Source: Octopus bimaculoides (taxonomy: Eukaryota). From it: 36,009 nucleotides of DNA. How positions within the stretch are numbered: position 1 is the stretch's first letter; every line of letters starts with the position of its first letter. This document shows positions 3,458 to 34,690 of the stretch, in pieces. The position numbers and the translations under genes were made by a program. The notes beneath the pieces were generated by a model. The model did no database searches. It had not been told where the DNA came from and saw only the letters and a list, made by a program, of their open reading frames with translations. The stretch spans positions 80,759 through 116,767 of the forward strand of contig NC_068992.1 in assembly GCF_001194135.2 (NCBI RefSeq), given 5' to 3'.

Positions 3458-4158
3458 NNNNNNNNNNNNNNNNNNNNNNNNNNNNNNNNNNNNNNNNNNN
3501 NNNNNNNNNNNNNNNNNNNNNNNNNNNNNNNNNNNNNNNNNNNNNNNNNNNNNNNNNNNNNNNNNNNNNNNNNNNNNNNNNNNNNNNNNNNNNNNNNNNN
3601 NNNNNNNNNNNNNNNNNNNNNNNNNNNNNNNNNNNNNNNNNNNNNNNNNNNNNNNNNNNNNNNNNNNNNNNNNNNNNNNNNNNNNNNNNNNNNNNNNNNN
3701 NNNNNNNNNNNNNNNNNNNNNNNNNNNNNNNNNNNNNNNNNNNNNNNNNNNNNNNNNNNNNNNNNNNNNNNNNNNNNNNNNNNNNNNNNNNNNNNNNNNN
3801 NNNNNNNNNNNNNNNNNNNNNNNNNNNNNNNNNNNNNNNNNNNNNNNNNNNNNNNNNNNNNNNNNNNNNNNNNNNNNNNNNNNNNNNNNNNNNNNNNNNN
3901 NNNNNNNNNNNNNNNNNNNNNNNNNNNNNNNNNNNNNNNNNNNNNNNNNNNNNNNNNNNNNNNNNNNNNNNNNNNNNNNNNNNNNNNNNNNNNNNNNNNN
4001 NNNNNNNNNNNNNNNNNNNNNNNNNNNNNNNNNNNNNNNNNNNNNNNNNNNNNNNNNNNNNNNNNNNNNNNNNNNNNNNNNNNNNNNNNNNNNNNNNNNN
4101 NNNNNNNNNNNNNNNNNNNNNNNNNNNNNNNNNNNNNNNNNNNNNNNNNNNNNNNNNN
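3458..4158. other. Assembly gap (N run); further gaps at 980-989, 15526-15625 and 26745-26782
   Basis: N characters; three of the four gaps (not 15526-15625) abut a (TA)n run. Confidence 1.
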
Positions 4159-4979: not shown

Positions 4980-6175
4980 TAGGTATTGGTTTCAAAATTT
5001 TGGTACGAGGCCAAGGCCAGCAATTTCAGAGGTGCGGGTTAAGTTAATTACATCGACCCCATTGCACAACTGGTACTTGTTCTATTGACCTTGAAAGGAT
5101 GAAAGACAAAGTTGGTCCCAGTGACTCATGAACTCAGAATGTAAAGATGAGCAAAATACTGCCAGGAATTCTGCCCAATGTGCTAATGGTTCTGTCAGTT
5201 TGCTGCCTTACTGAATCTTCAAATACTGATTTTCAAATTTTGGCACAAGGCCAACAATTTCAAGGGAGGGTGGGGTAAGTCAATTACATTACTGTCAGGG
5301 CTCAACTGGTACTTATTCTATTGACCCCAGAAGGATGAAAGGCAAAGTCAACCTCAGTAGAATTTGAACTCAGGGCATAACAACAGATGAAATGCTACTA
5401 TGCATGTTAATGATTCTTTTCTACCCTAGGTACAAGGCCCGAAATTTTGGGGGAGGGGCCAGTCGATTAGATTGACCCCATTATGCAACTAGTACTTAAT
5501 TAATCGATCCCAAAAGGATGAAGAGCAAAGTTGACCTGGGCAGAATTTGAACTCAGAACGTAAAGACAGACGAAATACCCCTAAGCATTTCGTCAGGTGT
5601 GCTAACGTTTCTGCTAGCTCTCCATCTTAAAAAATGTTCTTTTCTACTCTAGGCACAAGGCCCAAATTTTTGGGAAGGGGGCCAGTCGATTAGATCAACC
5701 CCAGTACGCAACTGGTACTTAGTTTATTAACTCCAAAAGAAGAAAGGCAAAGTCGACCTCGACGGAATTTGAAGTCAGAATGTAAAGTCCGATGAAATTC
5801 CACTAAACATTTCGTTCGGCATTCTAATGTTTCTGCCAGCTCACTGCCTTAGCATGCTAATTAATACACCAGCTCCACTATTTTGTGTAAGGACAGATGA
5901 AATGCTGCTAAGCATTTTTCCCAGGGTGCTAACGATTCTGCCAGTTCATCACTGAATCTTTGAATATTTGTTACAAGTTTTGACAGAAATTTTAGGGGAG
6001 GTGTATGTCAGTTACATCGTCCCCAGTATTCAACTGGTACATATTTTATTGACCCTGAAGAGATGAAAAGCAGAGTTGATGTTGGCAGAATTTGAATTCA
6101 GAACATGAAGTCAAATGAAACGCCGCTAAGCATTTTGCTTGACATGGTAGCAATTTTGCCAGCTCCCCGCCTAAC
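4980..6175 (-). mobile_element. Tandem array of five to six SINE family B copies
   Basis: Units start near 4985, 5230, 5420, 5640, 5890 (partial) and 5985, all in the same orientation. Confidence 0.85.
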
Positions 6176-6718
6176 ATCTGATTACAAACAATCAATTAAT
6201 TGGATCTATTCAAGTGATAAATACATATTTAATCCCGTTTTAAAATTTAGTTAATCCAACTTATAATCTACCCGACTGAGTAAAAAATGAAAAAATGAAA
6301 GTTGTTATGCATTTGAAGAATCAGATACTTCTGACTATGAACTGCATCTAGTTAGCTTGCCCCATATTTGCACTGCTAGGTCATTGTCAGTTACATTACA
6401 TTTGTTTGTCATTATATTACCAATTAATTACTTGAAAACTATATTTTTTAGTTTAGATGTTTATGTTACCTGAAATAAGGAAGTGGTTAAAATCTTGGGT
6501 TACCAATGACAGACTATCTGGTTTAAGTTGAAAATCTTGCCTGGCCATTGTATCATGTATCTGAACAACACTCTTGAACACAAGTGCCCCCTCTCCACAC
6601 ATACATTTATGCGTATGTTTGCATAAAGGAAGAAAGAGAGAAACAAAGAGTAAGATACAGAGAGAAAGAAATGGTAAAACTGTTGGATAAATAACAAGCG
6701 ATATCCATATCCTACATC

Positions 6719-12984: not shown

Positions 12985-13860
12985 GCATATCTAGTGAGAG
13001 TAGCTGTTTTGTATAAATGATAACTTATCTGGCAGATCCACAACAAACAACGAGGGTAACAGGATGGTTCCTTGGGGGACTCCACTCACAATAATTGTAT
13101 CTTTGAAAGAACAACATTGGCTGCAACAACTTGATCTCCATCTTAAAAAGTCATGCTGCCACTCTTGTAAACTTAACAAAGCTTGCGGCATATTCTGTAG
13201 CCAACTTTCTCAAAAGCCTTCACAAGATTAAAATATATCACACACATTTGATTAGCTGAGCAGCAGTTTCAACAACCAGTCATAATTCTGTAGAACCTGT
13301 ATGAATTAGCTGAGTGACAATATATCATTTTTCTCTAAGAATGTGATCAGTTTCTCCACTTATAATTCATTCAATAACTTTGCTGTTATATGAAGTCAGA
13401 GAGGCAGACCTGTACATCTTAGTATCTATTCTACTTCCATCCTTTTGAAGAGGACATTTTGTGCTTTGTTTCAATTTTTGTGAGAGCTGATCACTTGCAA
13501 GGAAGCTTTTCAAAGTATCTCAAGAGGCTTTACTTAAGCTCTTTTGCAGGTTTCCAAGAAAATTGTAGGAATCTATTAGGAGTTCTTACTGAATTTTGGT
13601 TCTTTTAATTGATGACTGAAATGACTTGTTCTTCTTTTATAGTGGCATAATAGATGGTTATCCTTTCTCTGTGTTGAACTGTAGCATTGAAGAATTATCT
13701 GACAAATTTATTTCCATGTTTCACATCAAAGTTGTTCATTCAGTCTTTTGCTTCTTCTTTTAAGATCTGCAGTCAGTGAACTATTTTATTGGAATGGCGG
13801 TCTTGTTTTGAAATACAGTAAAGCATTTTCTTTAGAGTTTATGTTTACTGCAGCCCCTAA
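12985..13860 (-). mobile_element. Degenerate non-LTR retrotransposon (CR1/Jockey-like LINE) ORF2 reverse-transcriptase fragment
   Basis: Broken reading frames give MYRSASLTSYNSKVIE (NYRPISLTS motif), VIYFNLVKAFEKV (YLDFxKAFDKV motif) and VSGVPQGTILLPSLFVV (GVPQG motif), with stops and frameshifts. Confidence 0.85.
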
Positions 13861-14936: not shown

Positions 14937-15669
14937 TCACTCTTCAACTATAGAAAATAGATATTTTCTCATTAAACAAGAACTGATTTTATTTCATCAT
15001 TTTGATATAACCAACAGATATTTCAATAAAAAATAAATTTAAAATAACAGAAATTAAAATGAAACCAAAAAAGAGAAAATATGCAAAAACTGAACCTTAT
15101 CACAGAAATTTCCATGGTTCCAGTGGATCAGAATTTTTGTTGTGGAACCATAGTCCAAACAGAAAACAAATTGCTGTATTAAACATGTCACAGACGCAAT
15201 CCTGTTGACTGAGGTTTTCCTAGAAGTTTGAAGTATTTAGTAATTTTTTTAATCAGTCTACCAGTTCAATGTGAATTGCAACATTGATAATTTATTAGGG
15301 AAAAGAACATTATGAACAGAAATCACCATCATACAATAGAAATGACTTGATAAACACATTTTGTATTTTCAAACTGATTTCATTTGGATAGGAACACTTT
15401 TTTTCTCATAATATATTAACACATCAAAGAATTCCTGGCATTCAACTAGGCAACTTAGGTTTCTTGCATACAAATGCAATTTTCGTAAATTATATACATA
15501 ATTTATATACATATATTTTTGTATANNNNNNNNNNNNNNNNNNNNNNNNNNNNNNNNNNNNNNNNNNNNNNNNNNNNNNNNNNNNNNNNNNNNNNNNNNN
15601 NNNNNNNNNNNNNNNNNNNNNNNNNATTTTTCATTCCAGGTGCCATTATATTAAACATTTGCAAAGAGT

Positions 15670-20269: not shown

Positions 20270-22050
20270 GGGGAGAGGCATTAGCTGATATTGTCAAAAC
20301 CAGTGCTTGACTGATACTTTGTTTTATTGATCCTGAAAGGCTAAAAGGCAAATTTGGACGTGGTAGGATTTGAACTTAGAATGGAAGAACCAGAAGTTGA
20401 TGTTCTAATGATTCTGCTAATCCAATGAAAAACATGCACGAGAAACATGGCAATTTCATATTTCTATTCATAGTTTCATTTGCCTCTCCTCTCGAAATTG
20501 CTGGCCTTGTGCAAAAATTAGAAAGAATTGTTAAATATTTCGAGTGCAACACTCCAGCCTGTTTAATTATGTTAAAAATATTTCGATTTTATCTTTGATC
20601 TCATTCTGTAGTTTTGGGGTCTATTTTCACTCTCTGACCACTGCCACCTTCCCCATCCGCTAACCTTCTCACCTCCCTTCTTTTCTCATTATCTAATTAC
20701 AAACAATTAACAACAACAATTGAAGTGAAGTAAAGGTTATTTCCCTTTGAAAATTTGACACTCATCATGTCAAGTTGAATAATAATGATAATAATAATAA
20801 CAATAACAACGATTTCAAATTTTGGCACTAGGCCAGCAATTTTGGGGACGGGGTAAGTCGATTGCTTTGACCCCAGTACTCAATTGGTACTTATTTTATC
20901 GACCCTGAAAAGATGGAAGGCAAAGTTGACCTCGGCAGAATTTGAACTCAGAATGTAACGACAGGCCAAATACCACTAAGCATTTTTTCTGACGTGCTAA
21001 CAATTCTGCCAGCTCACCACCTTAATAATAATAATCCTTTCTACTATAGGTACAAGGCCTGAAATTGTTGGGGAGGGAGCTAGTTAATTACATCGACCCC
21101 AGTGTTTCACTGGTACTTAATTTATTGACCCCGAAAGGATGATAGGCAAAGTCAGCCTTGGCAGAATTTGAACTCAGAATGAAGTGATGGGGCAAAATAC
21201 TGCTAAGCATTTCGTCCAGTGTGCTAACAATTCTGCCAGCTCACCACCTTAATATTAGAATAATAATAATAATTATAATAATAATAATAATAATAATAAT
21301 AATGTTTTCAAATTTTGGGACAAGGCCAGCAAGTCCGGGGGAGGGTATAAGTCGATTGCATTGACCCCAGTACTCAACTGGCACTTAATTTATTGACCCT
21401 GAAAGGATGAAAGGCAAAGTCGACTGTGGCAGAATTTGAACTCAGAATGTAAAGACGGGTGAAAAACTGTTAAGCCCGGTGTGCTAATGATTCTGCCAGG
21501 TCACCGCCTTAATAATAATAGTAATAATAATAATAATGATAATAATAATAATAACCTGGTAATTAAGAACTATCCGAGAGTCTTTCATAATAAACAAAAT
21601 AATAATGACGATAATATACCATGTTGGAACAATCCAGAAAGGGTGATGGAGGGGTAGAGTTGATTAAATCAACCTCAGTGTATAACTGGTATCGTTTTTT
21701 ATTGATACAACAAAGATGAAAGGCAAAGTTAACACTGTTGGGATTTGAAATCAAAACAGTGAAGTTAAAATTCCTCAAAGCATTTTGTTTCTTTGGTGCT
21801 CTACCGATTTTCCATAATAATAATCATAATAATGGTTTCAAATTTTGGCAAAAGGCCAGCAATTTCAGAGTGGGGTAAGTCGATTACATCAACCTGCCTC
21901 AGTACATGACTGGTACTCACTTTATCAACCCTGAAAGGATGAAAGGCAAAGTTGACCTCAATGGGATTTGAACTCAGAATGTAAAGGTGAACAAAATGCT
22001 GCTGAACATTTTGCCTGGTGTGCTAATGATTCTGCCACCTTGCTACCATG

Positions 22051-22129
<79 letters not shown>

Positions 22130-22318
22130 TGATGATGATGATGATGATTATTTCAAATATCGGCTCAATTTTTCGAGGGGGGTGGGTTAAGTTGATTACT
22201 TCGACCCCAGTGATCAAGTGGTACTCATTTTATTGACCCTGGGAAGATGAAATGCAAATTGACCTCAGCAGAATTTGACCTAAGAATGTCAAAACGGATG
22301 AAATGGAAATGCTGCTGC

Positions 22319-22352
<34 letters not shown>

Positions 22353-22567
22353 CCTTTCTGCTCTAGGCACAAGGCCTGAAATTTTGGGGGAGGGGACTAG
22401 TCAGTTACATCAACCCCAGTATGCAACTGGTACTTAATTTATCAATCCCGAAAAGATGAAAGGCAAAGTCGACCTCAGCGGAATTTGAACTCAGAACGTA
22501 GCGACGGGTGAAATACCACTAAGCATTTTGTCCAGAGTGCTAATATTTCTGCCAGCTTTCTGCCTTA
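20270..22567 (-). mobile_element. Largest SINE family B array (about eight copies) with (AAT)n spacers
   Basis: Units at about 20270, 20812, 21035, 21305, 21630, 21835, 22150 and 22350, all on minus. Confidence 0.87.
22051..22148. repeat. (AAT)n(GAT)n microsatellite
   Basis: Direct reading. Confidence 0.95.
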
Positions 22568-22605
22568 GTAGTAATAATAATAATAATAATAATCATCATC
22601 ATCAT

Positions 22606-22768
22606 CATCGTCGTTTAACGTCCGCTTTCCATGCTAGCATGGGTTGGACGATTTGACTGAGGACTGGTGAAACCGGATGGCTACACCAGGCTCCAGTCTG
22701 ATTTGGCAGAGTTTCTACAGCTGGATGCCCTTCCTAATGCCAACCACTCAGAGAGTGTAGTGGGTGAA
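22606..22768 (-). mobile_element. Family C 3' end, near-identical to 60-227
   Basis: Reverse complement of the window-start copy. Confidence 0.8.
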
Positions 22769-22779
22769 TAATGGTAATA

Positions 22780-24360
22780 ACAACAACAACAATCAGAATA
22801 TTAATGTTACCTTAATGAAAGACTCAATTTCCATCTGATAACGATGAAGTTGTAAATGAATCAGAAATTGTGTTGATATAAATATCTGGAAATTGAGATA
22901 ACAGTGTGGGGACTGAAAACAGAAGGAAACCCTTGTGGTTATAGAGGGAACTCCCTGTAATTATAGGGTGTTTTGAGAATGATGAAAGAAATATATCTAC
23001 TGGTAAATGTATCCCCAAAACCCTATAACTTACAAATATGAACAATATACAGAAAATGGTGCAACTAGACACTGCACACATGTTGTGAAGAATTGTGTGA
23101 AAACAAACAGAAAATATGAAACCAAAGCAAAATACTTCATACGCCCGAGGCATAGAGAGTAGTTCTCAGTCTTGCAGTAAAAACACACACTAAAATAAGA
23201 TTACAAAAAGAAATAATGATAAAAATAAAATAAAATAATATTTTATATTCAAACAGTATGTATTAGAAAAATCTCAGATAAATTTAATGTAGTTGCCTAC
23301 AGTTTATAATATCTGTGCTGGAGAAATTAAACAAATGTACATAAATCATGTTATTCTCTTTGTACACAGAAAAATAAAGGAGATTATTTGGATATGTTTT
23401 ATAGCTGATTAGCCACTTTCCAGAAGATAAGTGCCCCTTATTCATCTGTTTACAAAGAGATCAGAATAGCAAATGCTTTTTAAATCAAATACAAACCAAG
23501 ATTTAACTGAAATGGCTAAACTAATATGTATATATATCATGCATTTGTTGGTGGCATGATTAAATAATTAAGAAATAAGCACAAGGACATTAATTTGGAA
23601 TATGATGGGAGAAGTCGATTTAATCCTCTAAACCCTAATCATGAGATATCTTTAAATAAGTGAAGGTAGTAAATAAATTTAGATTCTATGGACTTGACTG
23701 TTATCATCATTACAGAGTAACATCCAGTTTTGTAAGAATTGAATTCAGAAAAATAAAACAGATTTAATTAAACATTTCAAGAAATTTAATTTTTTGTTTC
23801 TGTCAAACAAATTTCTTACATTTGTTTACAAAAACTTATTTTGTAGAGAAGGGCAAATATCTGAATCAAGTACCCCTGCCCTCAGCGTATGACTGTATTT
23901 TGATAATCCCATGGTATAATAGATTAAATCGACTTCACTATTATCAGGAGTTAGAAACAATGCAGAGGTATTAAACTAAATATTTTCTGCAAAAATCATT
24001 TAGTTTGGGGCTCTGCAATTTCTGCTTAATTCTTCACCCGAGCACCTCATTTGATAACAACAACAACAATAACAACAATAATGTCATCAACAACAACAAC
24101 AACAACAGTTGTAGTAGCAGTAACAACAACAACAATGTTGACTGCTATGTCTATAACAATGAGAATGCATGCGCTGGGGCTGGGGTACAGGCTGGATTTG
24201 TTTCCTTTCTGTTTCTCAGAGGCAATGGAAATGATGATGGTGGCATGGTGGTGGTGGTGGTGGTGGTGGCGGAGGTGGTGGTGTTGGCAGTGGTAGTGGT
24301 GGTGATGATGGCAGTGGAAGAGGTGACAGTCATGGAGTAACAATGCTATGATATCTATGT
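22780..24360 (-). other. Probable Kv-beta 3' UTR, with (CAC)n and (AAC)n tracts near its start
   Basis: About 1.6 kb of unique sequence without recognisable SINEs directly downstream of the terminal exon. The end point was not determined and no clear AATAAA was found. Confidence 0.4.
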
Positions 24361-24573
24361 CTACTGGATAGAACATGGAGGTGAACCGAGTGCTGCATCG
24401 TGCTGGTGGAGGGCATGTCGTGAGGGCATGTGGCTGACAATGTGGGTGGTGGTGGCACCACTGCTGCTGCCGGATTGTCCTGAAGTGCCAGCATTAGCTG
24501 AGCTCCCAGCAGCAGCACCGGCAGCGGTTCCGCTGCCACTACCACCCCCTCCAGCCGCCCTGTCCAAGTCTAG
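24361..24573 (-). CDS. Putative stop-codon readthrough extension of Kv-beta (70 codons + TAG), ending in CaaX-like CSIQ
   Basis: In frame after TGA-CTAG: LDLDRAAGGGGSGSGTAAGAAAGSSANAGTSGQSGSSSGATTTHIVSHMPSRHALHQHDAALGSPPCSIQ*. Hand count gives 130/210 G+C over 24361-24570 in an AT-rich locus. Confidence 0.62.
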   Translation of the reverse strand, partial: LDLDRAAGGGGSGSGTAAGAAAGSSANAGTSGQSGSSSGATTTHIVSHMPSRHALHQHDAALGSPPCSIQ

Positions 24574-24576
24574 TCA
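24570..24576 (-). promoter_or_regulatory. Readthrough-permissive stop context UGA-CUAG
   Basis: Plus strand reads ctagtca at 24570-24576, i.e. TGACTAG on minus. The same context is used by vertebrate AQP4, OPRK1, OPRL1, MAPK10, LDHB and MDH1 readthrough. Confidence 0.75.
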
Positions 24577-24666
24577 CCTGGGTGGATGCTCCTTGCGTGA
24601 AAGAGGTTTGTTGCCAAGTAATTTGTCCAATTCATTCATCAACGATGGTGTTAATTTTGGAACATA
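24574..24666 (-). CDS. KCNAB: Kv-beta terminal coding exon up to the first stop (TGA at 24576-24574)
   Basis: YVPKLTPSLMNELDKLLGNKPLSRKEHPPR* matches [29 protein letters not shown]. Acceptor gttcttgtattaCAG; phase 0 fits the previous exon. Confidence 0.94.
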   Translation of the reverse strand, partial: YVPKLTPSLMNELDKLLGNKPLSRKEHPPR

Positions 24667-25436
24667 CTGTAATACAAGAACAAACAGTGTGGTGAGAGAA
24701 GGTCACTGACGGAATGTAATAACGAGTATTATTAAACATCTAGAATGAATTTTAATAAGCATATATCGTTAGTTATTTCTATTAATGAGGCAGAGATAAA
24801 GAGATTGTAATAAATCTTTGAGTATGTATAATACACACATACACACAGATATATATACACACAGATATATATAATACACACATACACACAGATATATGTG
24901 GAAAAATGAACATTAAAGGGTTGTGATGATAAGTGAGATTCTAGAATTGGAATCTCTTACTCGAATCCAGGAACTCCTTCGAGAGTGTCAGGTTCTTCCA
25001 ATTTAAGTGAAAAAAAGTTTGTTTTTGAATTATATTCATTTGTTTGGTTATGATTAGATGGTTGTGCATGTTATGTGATATACTTTACACAATGGATATA
25101 ACAATATCATTGTTCTTGATCATGTCTATCTATATGACGTTTTGGTTGTTGAAACAACTATAAACTATAGAATAAATGTAAGACCAGCTACTTCATTATT
25201 CACTTATTACATATATTATGAGCAGGTTTGTACAACCATCCAGTATCATTACATTGGTCCCCCTGTGCAGACCTCAAAATGGTTAACACAAACAGAAAGC
25301 TGAGATGGTATGGCCATGTAGTAAGATCCACTTTCTGACCTCTTTCACGACTCTTTATCCAATCTCTCACTTCTTGTTCTGCTTAGTTTATTTTGTCAAC
25401 CATCCTCAACTATAACAATATCTGTTTCAATGCCAA

Positions 25437-26410: not shown

Positions 26411-26894
26411 TGATATATTTCTTGTAAACGCTAAGTTCTACGTATTACGTTTAAAATTTTAGTTTAAAAGCATTTCTTCGATAAGATAAGTTATGATTTT
26501 ATTTTAAGAAATTTTGTTAAATGTTTTTCGATTATTTATTTATTTATTGTTAAAACAAGTATTTTTTAATATTTTTATTTGATATTTATTATAAGTTACA
26601 ATACGTATATTGATATTATTATTATTATTATTATTATTATTATCTATATCTTAATTTAGACCTGATGTGTGACTATATTTTTGAATAGATTTAATTGCAG
26701 ATCGATTTGCTTATTAATTGAATTGGTTTTATTAGTTATCAATTNNNNNNNNNNNNNNNNNNNNNNNNNNNNNNNNNNNNNNATATATATATATATAGGG
26801 AGAGAGTGAAAGAGATTCGGTGGAATCATGAACTTAAGTTGAAGCACCAAGTCAGTCTGGTGTTATCTGCACAGCTCGAAGTAAGGTGAATAAA

Positions 26895-27817: not shown

Positions 27818-27906
27818 CTGCAGAGCTTGGAGATTTTCATAAAGTTGGTCTACTGATGTAGCTCCAAGTAAAACACAATGAATGGCTTCCTGTCTCAGAC
27901 ACCAGG
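27818..27906 (-). CDS. KCNAB: Kv-beta exon (89 nt, phase 1 to 0); not in the ORF track
   Basis: (A)WCLRQEAIHCVLLGATSVDQLYENLQALQ matches [30 protein letters not shown]. Acceptor ctccttatatttCAG, donor GTATTT. Confidence 0.95.
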
Positions 27907-29050: not shown

Positions 29051-29171
29051 CTATTGCCAGTTGAGCTAATGAGCAACCTAATCTATCAGCAACGACTGCC
29101 ACTTCTCTTAGACGTGCTTGCTGTTTGCGGCCCTCCTCACTGAGAATTTTATCTTTCAGCCATCCGTAATT
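29051..29171 (-). CDS. KCNAB: Kv-beta exon (121 nt, phase 0 to 1); not in the ORF track
   Basis: [40 protein letters not shown](A) matches [41 protein letters not shown]. Acceptor atttctctgCAG, donor GTAAGA. Confidence 0.96.
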
Positions 29172-30404: not shown

Positions 30405-30499
30405 CTTTAGGGCAGCACGAGAATAGATCGGTACTCCATCGTCATACTTCCCTGAAAGAATTCCTGATGCTAATGGGGACCAGCAAATTGTTCCAACAC
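30405..30499 (-). CDS. KCNAB: Kv-beta exon (95 nt, phase 1 to 0), cofactor-binding WSPL segment
   Basis: (G)[31 protein letters not shown] matches Kv-beta [32 protein letters not shown]. Acceptor catttctttTAG, donor GTATAT. Confidence 0.96.
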
Positions 30500-31637: not shown

Positions 31638-31758
31638 CAATTTTAGTGTAGATCTCATGCATGTGAAGCTCAACTTTATCTCGATGAAACATGTTATATT
31701 CAGCTTGTTCAGCAGTTGGTGGGATCAGGTTGAACTGGCGTGCCACAGCGTAACTTTC
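31638..31758 (-). CDS. KCNAB: Kv channel beta subunit (aldo-keto reductase family), internal exon (121 nt, phase 0 to 1)
   Basis: Translates [40 protein letters not shown](G), matching vertebrate Kv-beta EAYSVARQFNL.PP.CEQAEYHMFQREKVE...KIG. Acceptor ccctatgTAG, donor GTAAAG. Confidence 0.96.
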
Positions 31759-33946: not shown

Positions 33947-34690
33947 CAGGGCAACCTCCGTTCTCAACCATAGTTTGTTCTGAAAGTCTGTTCAAGAACC
34001 GAATCATTTTTTCCTATTACAATTAATGTAAAAGAGATTAATTCGTTTCCAAGCAGCAGATGAATCTTTATTTACATGTTCAGACTCCATATTTTAGTAT
34101 AAAACCGTTTCTCCAAACTGTAAATAGCACACAAAAGTGCATCATTTCTTCCCTTCCATAAAAACTTTTTGGGGGTTTCTTCCCTTCTTGGTCTCTTTGC
34201 TCAGGTAAATCTTTCTCTGGAGTTTTTTTCTTTTTTTCTTTCAGTGAAAACCTATCCAATGTTAGTTGTTTTTGCCTGCATTGTAAAACTTTTCTAAAAT
34301 GAGACATGACATTGTCATTGAAAAGGTTTACTGCTCTATTTGCTACCACTGTATTATCAGGGTGACATTTTCCCACAAAACTTTGCACATCACCTCATTT
34401 AGCACAAATTTCTTTGATTAAAGAACTTGGGACATCCTCCTTTCCTTCCTCCACCTCATAAGACATTTCCTTAGCCAAAGTCTTTTGCTGATCATTTTGA
34501 AGGTGTACAAGTTCTTCAGTGGTAAATTCAGTACAGTGGTCTCCCCCCAGCTCTTCAATATCTCCACTGTCGACATTCAAGCCCATAGTTTATCCCATAG
34601 AGACAATATCATCAACAGTAGCAATTTCCTCGACAGCAGCAGTTACTTGTAGCTGTCTCAAATCTCTCAAAGTCTTGTTAGAAAAGCACA
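33947..34690 (-). mobile_element. pogo/Tigger-like transposon 3' remnant (transposase C-terminus plus one terminal end)
   Basis: EEIATVDDIVSMG*TMGLNVDSGDIEEL...EDVPSSLIKEICAK*GDVQSFVGKCHPD...RAVNLFNDNVMSHFRKVLQCRQKQLTLDRF, a Tigger-type C-terminus. TA-CAGGGCAACCTCCG at 33945 looks like a TIR end with a TA target. Confidence 0.8.

Follow-up and report, generated by a model that had tools for sequence, protein, structure and literature searches.

A conserved CaaX-type C-terminus behind a stop codon that doubles as a splice donor suggests a conditional lipid anchor on the potassium channel subunit Kv-beta

We analysed a stretch of 36,009 nucleotides from Octopus bimaculoides (NCBI RefSeq assembly GCF_001194135.2, contig NC_068992.1, positions 80,759 to 116,767; in its full length referred to as the window, with all coordinates counted from its first letter). 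On its minus strand it carries the 3' part of the gene for Kv-beta, the beta subunit of potassium channels of the aldo-keto reductase type, followed behind the stop codon by an in-frame extension ending in a CaaX box. Five exons on the minus strand with canonical AG/GT borders were assembled into the C-terminal 172 residues of the protein, i.e. 31638..31758 (...YTKIG; supported by its borders, 100% protein identity and tblastn), 30405..30499 (...SRAALK), 29051..29171 (...AQLAI) and 27818..27906 (AWCLRQEAIHCVLLGATSVDQLYENLQALQ), each of these three with borders read and a tblastn match, and the last core coding exon 24577..24666 (YVPKLTPSLMNELDKLLGNKPLSRKEHPPR), read from the sequence, which in the spliced isoforms ends at 24578 with base 24577 being intron position +1. 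The assembled protein contains the Pfam domain PF00248 (Aldo_ket_red; residues 10-158, E = 6.4e-22), is 100% identical to the O. bimaculoides Kv-beta-2 isoforms XP_052827990 and XP_014785454 and 64-76% identical to other metazoan Kv-beta proteins. The gene is Kv-beta, an AKR6 aldo-keto reductase, as judged by Pfam PF00248 and orthology. Kv-beta subunits are regarded as soluble cytoplasmic partners of Shaker/Kv1 channels, and in flies Kv-beta ties the cellular redox state to excitability and sleep. We know of no description of any lipidation of this ion-channel auxiliary subunit.

The core reading frame closes with ...KEHPPR and a TGA at 24576-24574. Directly behind it lies a stop-free run of 70 codons (24573-24364), made up of a linker of 66 codons (24376..24573) and the CaaX box TGT TCT ATC CAG, i.e. 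Cys-Ser-Ile-Gln (24364..24375), and closed by a second stop, TAG (24361..24363), which is found at the homologous position in all taxa compared. The initial annotation had read positions 24361-24375 as C-S-I-Q-stop; the reverse complement TGTTCTATCCAGTAG confirms this reading on the minus strand and places the Cys codon TGT at 24375-24373, exactly four residues from the C-terminus. The linker is rich in Gly/Ser/Ala/Thr (63%) and becomes His-rich toward its end, contains no Pfam domain that we could find, and is predicted to be flexible. The first poly(A)-signal-like hexamer downstream, ATTAAA at 23785..23790, i.e. 786 nt past the TGA, is by pattern match a candidate for the 3' end of the mRNA of the short isoform. 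The 8-mer CAGCAGCA occurs within the extension, at 24462-24469 on the minus strand; in Drosophila readthrough regions it is reported to be enriched above all other 8-mers (PMC5100048), and here it may just reflect the Ser/Gly-rich repeats. Right after the second stop, at 24040-24340 on the minus strand, long triplet-repeat runs (CAC/CCA/ACC, then GTT/GTTGTT) keep nearly all six frames open and create mechanical open reading frames (ORFs) of 100-150 codons; they are not conserved in Argonauta, where a (TAGA)n microsatellite stands instead.

The first stop is embedded in the octamer GTGACTAG (24570..24577, minus strand), identified by sequence reading and comparison, in which two signals share the same letters. 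In the context CCCAG|GTGACTAG the GT of a splice donor occupies 24577-24576, the TGA 24576-24574 and the CTAG 24573-24570, resulting in the donor CAG|GTGACT and at the same time in the stop context UGA_CUAG. The octamer is identical across six cephalopod taxa. Isoforms of O. bimaculoides, O. sinensis, Argonauta hians and decapodiforms go on past the donor as ...HPPR|VINNPRL..., resulting in the alternative spliced C-terminus VINNPRLRKWLNEIEYFNTSFILSEHE. Since these conserved isoforms continue as ...HPPR-VINNPRLRKWLNEIEYFNTSFILSE(H/Q)E, splicing does take place at CAG|GT, and the TGA fills positions +2 to +4 of this real 5' splice donor. The stop is carried only by mRNA that leaves the intron unspliced, annotated as the 375-aa isoform X2. 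In decapodiform RNA assemblies the corresponding 335/336-aa products ending in ...PPR-stop are encoded on 44 contigs versus 23 contigs for the 363-aa spliced form, showing the stop-bearing mRNA to be a major, abundant form.

The alternative terminal exon encoding VINNPRLRKWLNEIEYFNTSFILSE(H/Q)E is almost invariant among coleoid cephalopods and was located at 80915-80998 in Argonauta (L021), 61549-61632 in O. vulgaris (L022) and 1644-1725 in a decapodiform transcript (L001). Its downstream distance from the donor is 17.7 kb in Argonauta and 32.4 kb in O. vulgaris; a tblastn search did not find it in the O. bimaculoides window, placing it more than 24.5 kb from the donor at 24577. The window contains four assembly gaps (980-989, 3458-4158, 15526-15625 and 26745-26782), among which the 701-nt gap could conceal sequence, and the location of this exon inside any of them is unlikely. 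In molluscs, annelids, nemerteans and rotifers, almost every short form of Kv-beta ends in ...R-stop; as this ending is what an unspliced phase-2 donor AG|GTRA encodes, the arrangement is old. The spiralian tails spliced onto the shared ...R donor differ between lineages, with SSRRSIQTQPKT in oysters, NWLQRSTSKP in mussels and ...HRQFLRNFSLAKIFPWGKT in heterobranch gastropods (proteins P0004-P0050), and no counterpart of the cephalopod VINN tail was seen among the tails of other molluscs. This diversity of alternative tails across spiralian lineages makes the Kv-beta C-terminus a hotspot of isoform diversity.

For six cephalopod taxa and one bivalve, the post-stop sequence could be recovered from a transcript or a genome. 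In O. bimaculoides, TGA CTAG is followed by 70 codons ending in ...DAALGSPPCSIQ-TAG (CSIQ), in O. vulgaris by 68 codons ending in ...NDAAPPPCSIQ-TAG and in Argonauta hians by 68 codons ending in ...DAALASPPCSIQ-TAG-TAG (CSIQ), after which the (TAGA)n microsatellite begins. Among the decapodiforms, Acanthosepion pharaonis (genome and transcript) and a near-identical cuttlefish (decapodiform A), which differ from each other by one synonymous change in the extension, have TGA CTAG and 54 codons ending in ...DALGSPPCSLQ-TGA, and a second decapodiform (decapodiform B) has TGA CTAG and 54 codons ending in ...DALGTPPCTVQ-TGA-TAG. The heterodont bivalve, whose protein is 88.6% identical to that of Dreissena, has a transcript reading AGG TGA CTA (context TGA CTAA) with 37 codons ending in ...SNFNAPCTVQ-TGA. 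The extension lengths of 70, 68, 68, 54, 54, 54 and 37 codons in the seven taxa are thus all in frame and open, and the stop context TGA CTA GA is identical in 6/6 cephalopods. Invariant in every recovered mollusc extension are the Cys at -4, the aliphatic residue at -2, the terminal Gln and the stop following at once; the a1 residue varies (S or T), as does the second stop, which is TAG in octopods and TGA in decapodiforms and the bivalve. The G/S/A/T share of the tails is 56-63%, with Pro-Pro ahead of the Cys, a composition suggesting disorder. The expectation that Cys -4 and the CaaX end are kept in orthologues even where the linker diverges is thereby borne out in six cephalopods and a bivalve, with linkers of 37-70 codons that are nearly unalignable.

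Protein databases hold little of this tail. A profile search with the extension alone against 5.8 billion proteins returned nothing useful, the tail not being annotated as any cluster representative; among the cluster members of ten non-cephalopod spiralian Kv-beta proteins no model includes the tail, and a metagenome scan for further taxa carrying the extension gave no relatives. Two models were rejected as tail-bearing candidates: a 375-aa Dreissena protein, which is an internal-duplication artefact, and the early model UniRef A0A0L8G026 (P0129; 473 aa), which has a chimeric N-terminus and reaches the CSIQ tail via an 18-nt intron (GTGACTAGACTTGGACAG), a gene-prediction artefact that shows a gene predictor having rated the extension region as coding.

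The substitution pattern argues for translation of the extension. Between Octopus and Argonauta it shows 21 synonymous and 10 non-synonymous differences (ratio of non-synonymous to synonymous substitution rates, dN/dS, 0.13; Fisher p = 1.9e-7), distributed 4/5/22 over the three codon positions (chi-square p = 5e-5), and shifting the reading to frames +1 and +2 raises dN/dS to 2.8 and 6.7. For decapodiforms A and B the value is 0.36, and for the deep pairs 0.23-0.39 with frame 0 always being the lowest, so that frame 0 spans 0.13-0.40 overall and the other frames exceed 1 except for 0.85 in one pair. In a nucleotide alignment built without protein guidance, the extension contains only two gaps of 6 nt each, and the gaps past the second stop measure 1, 4, 8, 14, 17, 20, 21, 31 and 47 nt. 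Octopus and Argonauta are 83% identical across the last exon and 75% across the extension, and identity drops to 25% immediately past the second stop. By these comparisons the extension evolves as protein, with the pattern normally seen where a region is translated, and this pattern ends at the second stop. We consider it almost certain that the tail is conserved as coding sequence and that its C-x-[ILV]-Q end is under selection.

An equivalent ending is found in insects. A comparative-genomics catalogue lists Drosophila melanogaster Hk-RD (49 codons) and Anopheles gambiae AGAP010067-RA (45 codons), both with TGA-C as first and TGA as second stop, as 'Ancient' readthrough candidates (Jungreis et al. 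2016, PMC5100048, supplement). These are orthologous genes with the stop after a conserved ...R, with TGA then C, and with extensions similar in size to the 37-70 codons of molluscs. The catalogue differs from the present analysis in giving coordinates only, in offering no function and in not covering molluscs; the words prenyl, CaaX, farnesyl and potassium are absent from its text. The insect endings compared here come from Vanessa, Papilio and Anopheles models. RefSeq isoforms X2 of Vanessa tameamea and V. atalanta end in ...AKESGRGFCEIQ (CEIQ, in ...FCEIQ) and a Papilio machaon protein in ...AKESGRSFCDIQ (CDIQ). The Lepidoptera reach the tail without a stop, which makes it an ordinary, annotated alternative C-terminus there. 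The Anopheles dirus model reads ...STLALR|ESGVP...QKISFCEI(H)|KFNN..., which is what a predictor would make by splicing at CA|GTGA inside ...FCEIQ-TGA, and in the A. sinensis model the region opens with L-E-S, just as the cuttlefish extension does. Between phyla the tails of 37-70 residues are 15-30% identical and all end in C-x-[ILV]-Q, an ending that molluscs and insects have retained over hundreds of millions of years.

Among metagenome-derived Kv-beta fragments we made a separate observation. Many of them (ENA, JGI, MERC; P0343-P0357, P0365, P0366, P0375, P0389 and others) end in ...STLQQR-W-A(A/T)TGG(M/V)PP(Q/C), i.e. with a Trp exactly at the stop position of other lineages and then a 9-residue tail without CaaX box; these could represent a lineage that replaced the stop by a sense codon and lost part of the tail. 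The 133-aa fragment P0364 from a JGI contig reads ...STLALR-W-QSMCPPGG...KNVNFCSLQ-W-RTSS..., with W at both expected stop positions and CSLQ between them, which fits translation of TGA as Trp in an arthropod-like organism; as TGA and TGG cannot be told apart behind these W residues, it is not counted as evidence.

An ending of this kind is rare. Among the 1,177 stop-delimited ORFs of the window, 4.9% have Cys at -4, 0.25% end in C-x-[ILVM]-[QSMAC] and a single one, the Kv-beta extension, ends in C-x-[ILV]-Q, counts that agree with the initial statement that a random C-terminus rarely fits the pattern. Decisive against chance is the comparison between species, in which frame and type of ending recur in six cephalopod taxa and a bivalve together with the frame-specific coding signature. 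The ending also fits the rules of farnesyltransferase. A terminal Gln is a farnesyl-class X residue. In an in vivo yeast farnesyltransferase screen of all 8,000 CXXX motifs, most a1 residues are tolerated, and activity is limited mainly by D/E/K/R at a2 and K/P/R at X, with I/L/M/V at a2 being favourable (PMC10320760). Among the motif scores considered here, CEIQ and CDIQ are enriched 2.4- and 3.0-fold, and CEIP, CDIR and CEKA score 0.15-0.33. All five observed motifs fit FARNESYLTRANSFERASE and obey these a2/X rules of PMC10320760, as a2 is I/L/V and X is Q in every sequence, in line with the earlier assignment as a farnesyltransferase-type CaaX. The Cys of the extension is, judged by these motif rules, likely to be farnesylated. 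Literature searches for prenylation of Kv-beta or Hyperkinetic and for the motifs CSIQ, CSLQ and CTVQ found none.

As to how ribosomes would reach this ending, readthrough of the first stop is in cephalopods the most likely route, and we hold it to be probable with good confidence. It is favoured because UGA CUAG is present in six cephalopods, insect orthologues are TGA-C readthrough candidates, and donor position +5 is a C, which is off the splice consensus yet fits the readthrough context. UGA_CUAG is the best-characterised autonomous readthrough context, with 6-17% readthrough in validated mammalian genes (PMC5868278). The sequence hallmarks of readthrough are found together, i.e. an in-frame, open, orthologous extension, a frame-specific coding signature and a retained leaky first stop (TGA CTAG; TGA CTAA in the bivalve). 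Hk is not listed in the portion considered of the supplements of a Drosophila ribosome-profiling paper, and a literature search for cephalopod readthrough or octopus stop-codon editing found none.

This supports a model according to which the pre-mRNA can be processed in two ways behind the last core exon. Splicing at CAG|GTGACT to the distant exon would give the tail VINNPRL...SEHE. If the pre-mRNA is left unspliced and polyadenylated within the intron, donor positions +2 to +4 would be read as UGA and end the protein at ...HPPR. On this unspliced mRNA a fraction of the ribosomes would read through the UGA in its leaky UGA CUAG context, adding one residue plus 70 and thereby a flexible, Gly/Ser/Ala/Thr/His-rich linker ending in Cys-Ser-Ile-Gln, whose Cys would be lipidated by farnesyltransferase, presumably followed by cleavage of aaX and methylation. 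A minor proteoform tethered to the membrane would result, the subunit in its usual form hanging beneath the T1 domain of the channel. Given the known Kv1.2-beta2 architecture, a flexible linker of 37-70 residues should be long enough to span the tens of angstroms from the beta tetramer to the bilayer. Kv-beta being a tetramer, readthrough of even 5-15% would, by our own arithmetic, provide roughly 20-50% of the complexes with one or more anchored subunits. We judge the full chain from readthrough to a farnesylated, membrane-tethered Kv-beta somewhat better supported than its failure. To the broader proposal we give an even chance, namely that this is an ancient conditional lipid anchor older than the mollusc-arthropod split, in which isoform choice at the octamer plus UGA readthrough yields a farnesylated, linker-tethered subunit that may alter location or gating of the Kv1/Shaker-type channel, and possibly its trafficking, or the location of the free oxidoreductase.

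Several points weigh against this model. The open frame by itself is weak, non-significant evidence because the composition is G+C-rich and stop-poor: the extension has 62% G+C versus ~35% for the window and contains many triplet repeats, each of the three minus-strand frames lies largely open here, and from base counts we estimate that a 70-codon open run is expected in ~14% (about one in seven) of cases at that composition. The conserved TGA and the bases following it double as a splice donor, so that their conservation is not creditable to readthrough alone. We infer translation past the stop, like prenylation, from sequence comparison. A search for a conserved RNA structure behind the stop gave none (Z-scores -1.2 to -2.6, with folds differing between octopods and decapodiforms). 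Cephalopods edit RNA heavily, leaving UGA-to-UGG editing as a live alternative for the bypass. The screen scores considered are those of the insect motifs CEIQ and CDIQ. The sequences contain no second membrane signal, i.e. no polybasic stretch or palmitoylatable Cys beside the CaaX box, and the farnesyl group alone would therefore bind membranes weakly, although weak lipid binding may suffice for a subunit already held beneath the membrane by the channel.

The explanation that competes best accepts the translation of the extension and assigns C-x-[ILV]-Q another role, as a docking motif, a redox- or metal-sensitive Cys or a degradation signal. The missing second membrane signal and the lack of Kv-beta prenylation data in our literature search speak for such a role, as does the finding that each phylum has conserved residues of its own ahead of the Cys (PPC in molluscs, (K/R)xFC in insects), for which a bare CaaX box has no need. 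The invariants over two phyla, however, i.e. Cys at -4, I/L/V at -2, the terminal Gln and the stop, are exactly what farnesyltransferase reads out, a1 may be S, T, E or D, a freedom that the enzyme permits, CEIQ and CDIQ behave as in vivo substrates in the screen mentioned above, and C-x-[ILV]-Q, with Gln as last residue, fits neither a class I PDZ ligand nor a PTS1 signal, i.e. a peroxisomal signal. We regard a non-prenyl role as unlikely.

A little less likely still, and the main rival to readthrough in cephalopods, is removal of the stop by A-to-I editing, by which UGA would become UGI and be read as UGG, i.e. Trp. The same mechanism gives the hepatitis delta large antigen its prenylation box, cephalopods recode thousands of neural transcripts and their exceptionally common RNA editing is mentioned in PMC5868278, decapodiform Kv-beta transcripts show K/E and R/G differences of the kind that A-to-I editing typically produces, and the W exactly at the stop position in many metagenome fragments shows UGG being tolerated in some lineages. 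Against this, the TGA is present in every assembled transcript (L003-L010, L013, L014, L016-L019, L023), with the limit that these are consensus assemblies which low-level editing could escape, and RNA equals genomic DNA at the stop where both are known (A. pharaonis, L019 versus L020). No fusion of core and tail of ~390 aa exists among decapodiform cluster members or the 5.8 billion proteins. The A to be edited has a 5' G, the least favoured neighbour of ADAR, and no conserved duplex takes in the stop; the features expected for ADAR stop recoding, i.e. an A-to-G mismatch, a duplex and a favourable 5' neighbour, are thus not seen in the assemblies. The tail is furthermore found in insects and a bivalve, which edit below the cephalopod scale. 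As an observation beside this, the differences between the decapodiform assemblies (L003, L013, L018, L019; P0132-P0142) comprise ADKLGC/ADELGC, RLREV/RLGEV and VINNPR/VINNPG, all of the A-to-G type, and one E/D difference off that pattern.

Very improbable is that the extension is untranslated and conserved as RNA or DNA, for example as an element of intron-retention control or of the 3' untranslated region, with the CaaX box being incidental. The region does form the first part of an intron subject to alternative retention, a frequent binding place of splicing regulators, and its G+C-rich, repetitive sequence makes open frames cheap; the coding signature largely refutes this, as substitutions gather at the third positions of a single frame, indels keep the frame within the extension and break it beyond, conservation ends at the second stop, and the four-residue ending is kept across phyla where the nucleotide sequence is not. 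A variant in which UGA encodes selenocysteine finds no SECIS element or other Rfam match at E <= 1 in the scanned 3.8 kb of the window (21000-24800) and four transcripts (L003, L016, L019, L023). Hardly credible, finally, is that the tail is joined by splicing out the 18-nt GT..AG segment GTGACTAGACTTGGACAG (24577-24560) or belongs to an ordinary exon as in Lepidoptera, even though UniRef A0A0L8G026 was built that way, GT and AG are present in 6/6 cephalopods, 18 being a multiple of three keeps the frame, and butterfly RefSeq isoforms reach the CaaX tail without an intervening stop, since 18 nt is far under the size animal spliceosomal introns need, the segment is kept in all recovered transcripts and lacking among database proteins only from that ab initio, N-terminally chimeric model, and the 'AG' is part of a conserved Arg codon with the five codons between evolving codon-like (GAC/GAT/GAA, AGG/AGA).

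Readthrough leading to a farnesylated Kv-beta would have parallels in known systems. The PTS1 signals on mammalian lactate and malate dehydrogenases (PMC5868278) share with it the leaky UGA CUAG, a C-terminal sorting motif as the sole strongly conserved part, a minor proteoform sent to another compartment and an oligomer in which one extended subunit can carry the others. Kv-beta differs from these dehydrogenases in having a lipid-anchor box, a much longer, linker-like extension and a stop lying within a splice donor. With the hepatitis delta large antigen it shares a prenylation box that becomes C-terminal only after the stop is bypassed, and the terminal Gln; that system is however viral, depends on ADAR editing of an amber codon versus UGA readthrough and has no sequence relationship to Kv-beta. 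Farnesylated PRL phosphatases, CENP-E/F, STK11 and lamins have the same Cys at -4, aliphatic a2 and farnesyl-class X, the box in these classical farnesylated proteins being constitutive and that of Kv-beta being conditional on isoform choice and stop bypass.

Known before were thus the insect Kv-beta readthrough as a catalogue entry, the UGA_CUAG motif, readthrough-appended sorting signals and a viral prenylation box exposed by stop bypass. Within the literature searched, the farnesyl-type CaaX end appears to be new, as do the observation that this box alone is conserved between molluscs and insects, the double use of the stop as a splice donor and the occurrence of the system in both cephalopods and a bivalve. 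If the model is true, translational readthrough would here be seen to expose a CaaX box for the first time in a cellular gene, no lipidated Kv-beta would have been known before, its conditional membrane-anchored form would be a new layer of control on protostome neuronal K+ channels, a readthrough event catalogued in Drosophila and Anopheles without a function would gain one, and readthrough-appended sorting signals would extend from peroxisomal signals to lipid anchors. The locus further suggests that one octamer can act as both a splice donor and a leaky stop, and with respect to annotation it illustrates that automated pipelines miss such a tail or invent impossible introns to get there.

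In the remaining part of the window, two longer intronic ORF fragments were seen on the minus strand (34083-34589 and 12994-13209), one with a lysine-rich tail and the other with a GVPQGTILLPSLF motif reminiscent of reverse transcriptases; neither gave a Pfam match at E <= 0.01. A short interspersed repeat family with recurring ORF fragments of the type ...LHSEFKF..GQLCLSSFQG... is spread over intron and intergenic DNA on both strands, with examples at 20899-21021, 6049-6195, 5693-5848, 5492-5626, 5085-5207, 2334-2441, 2110-2217 and other positions.

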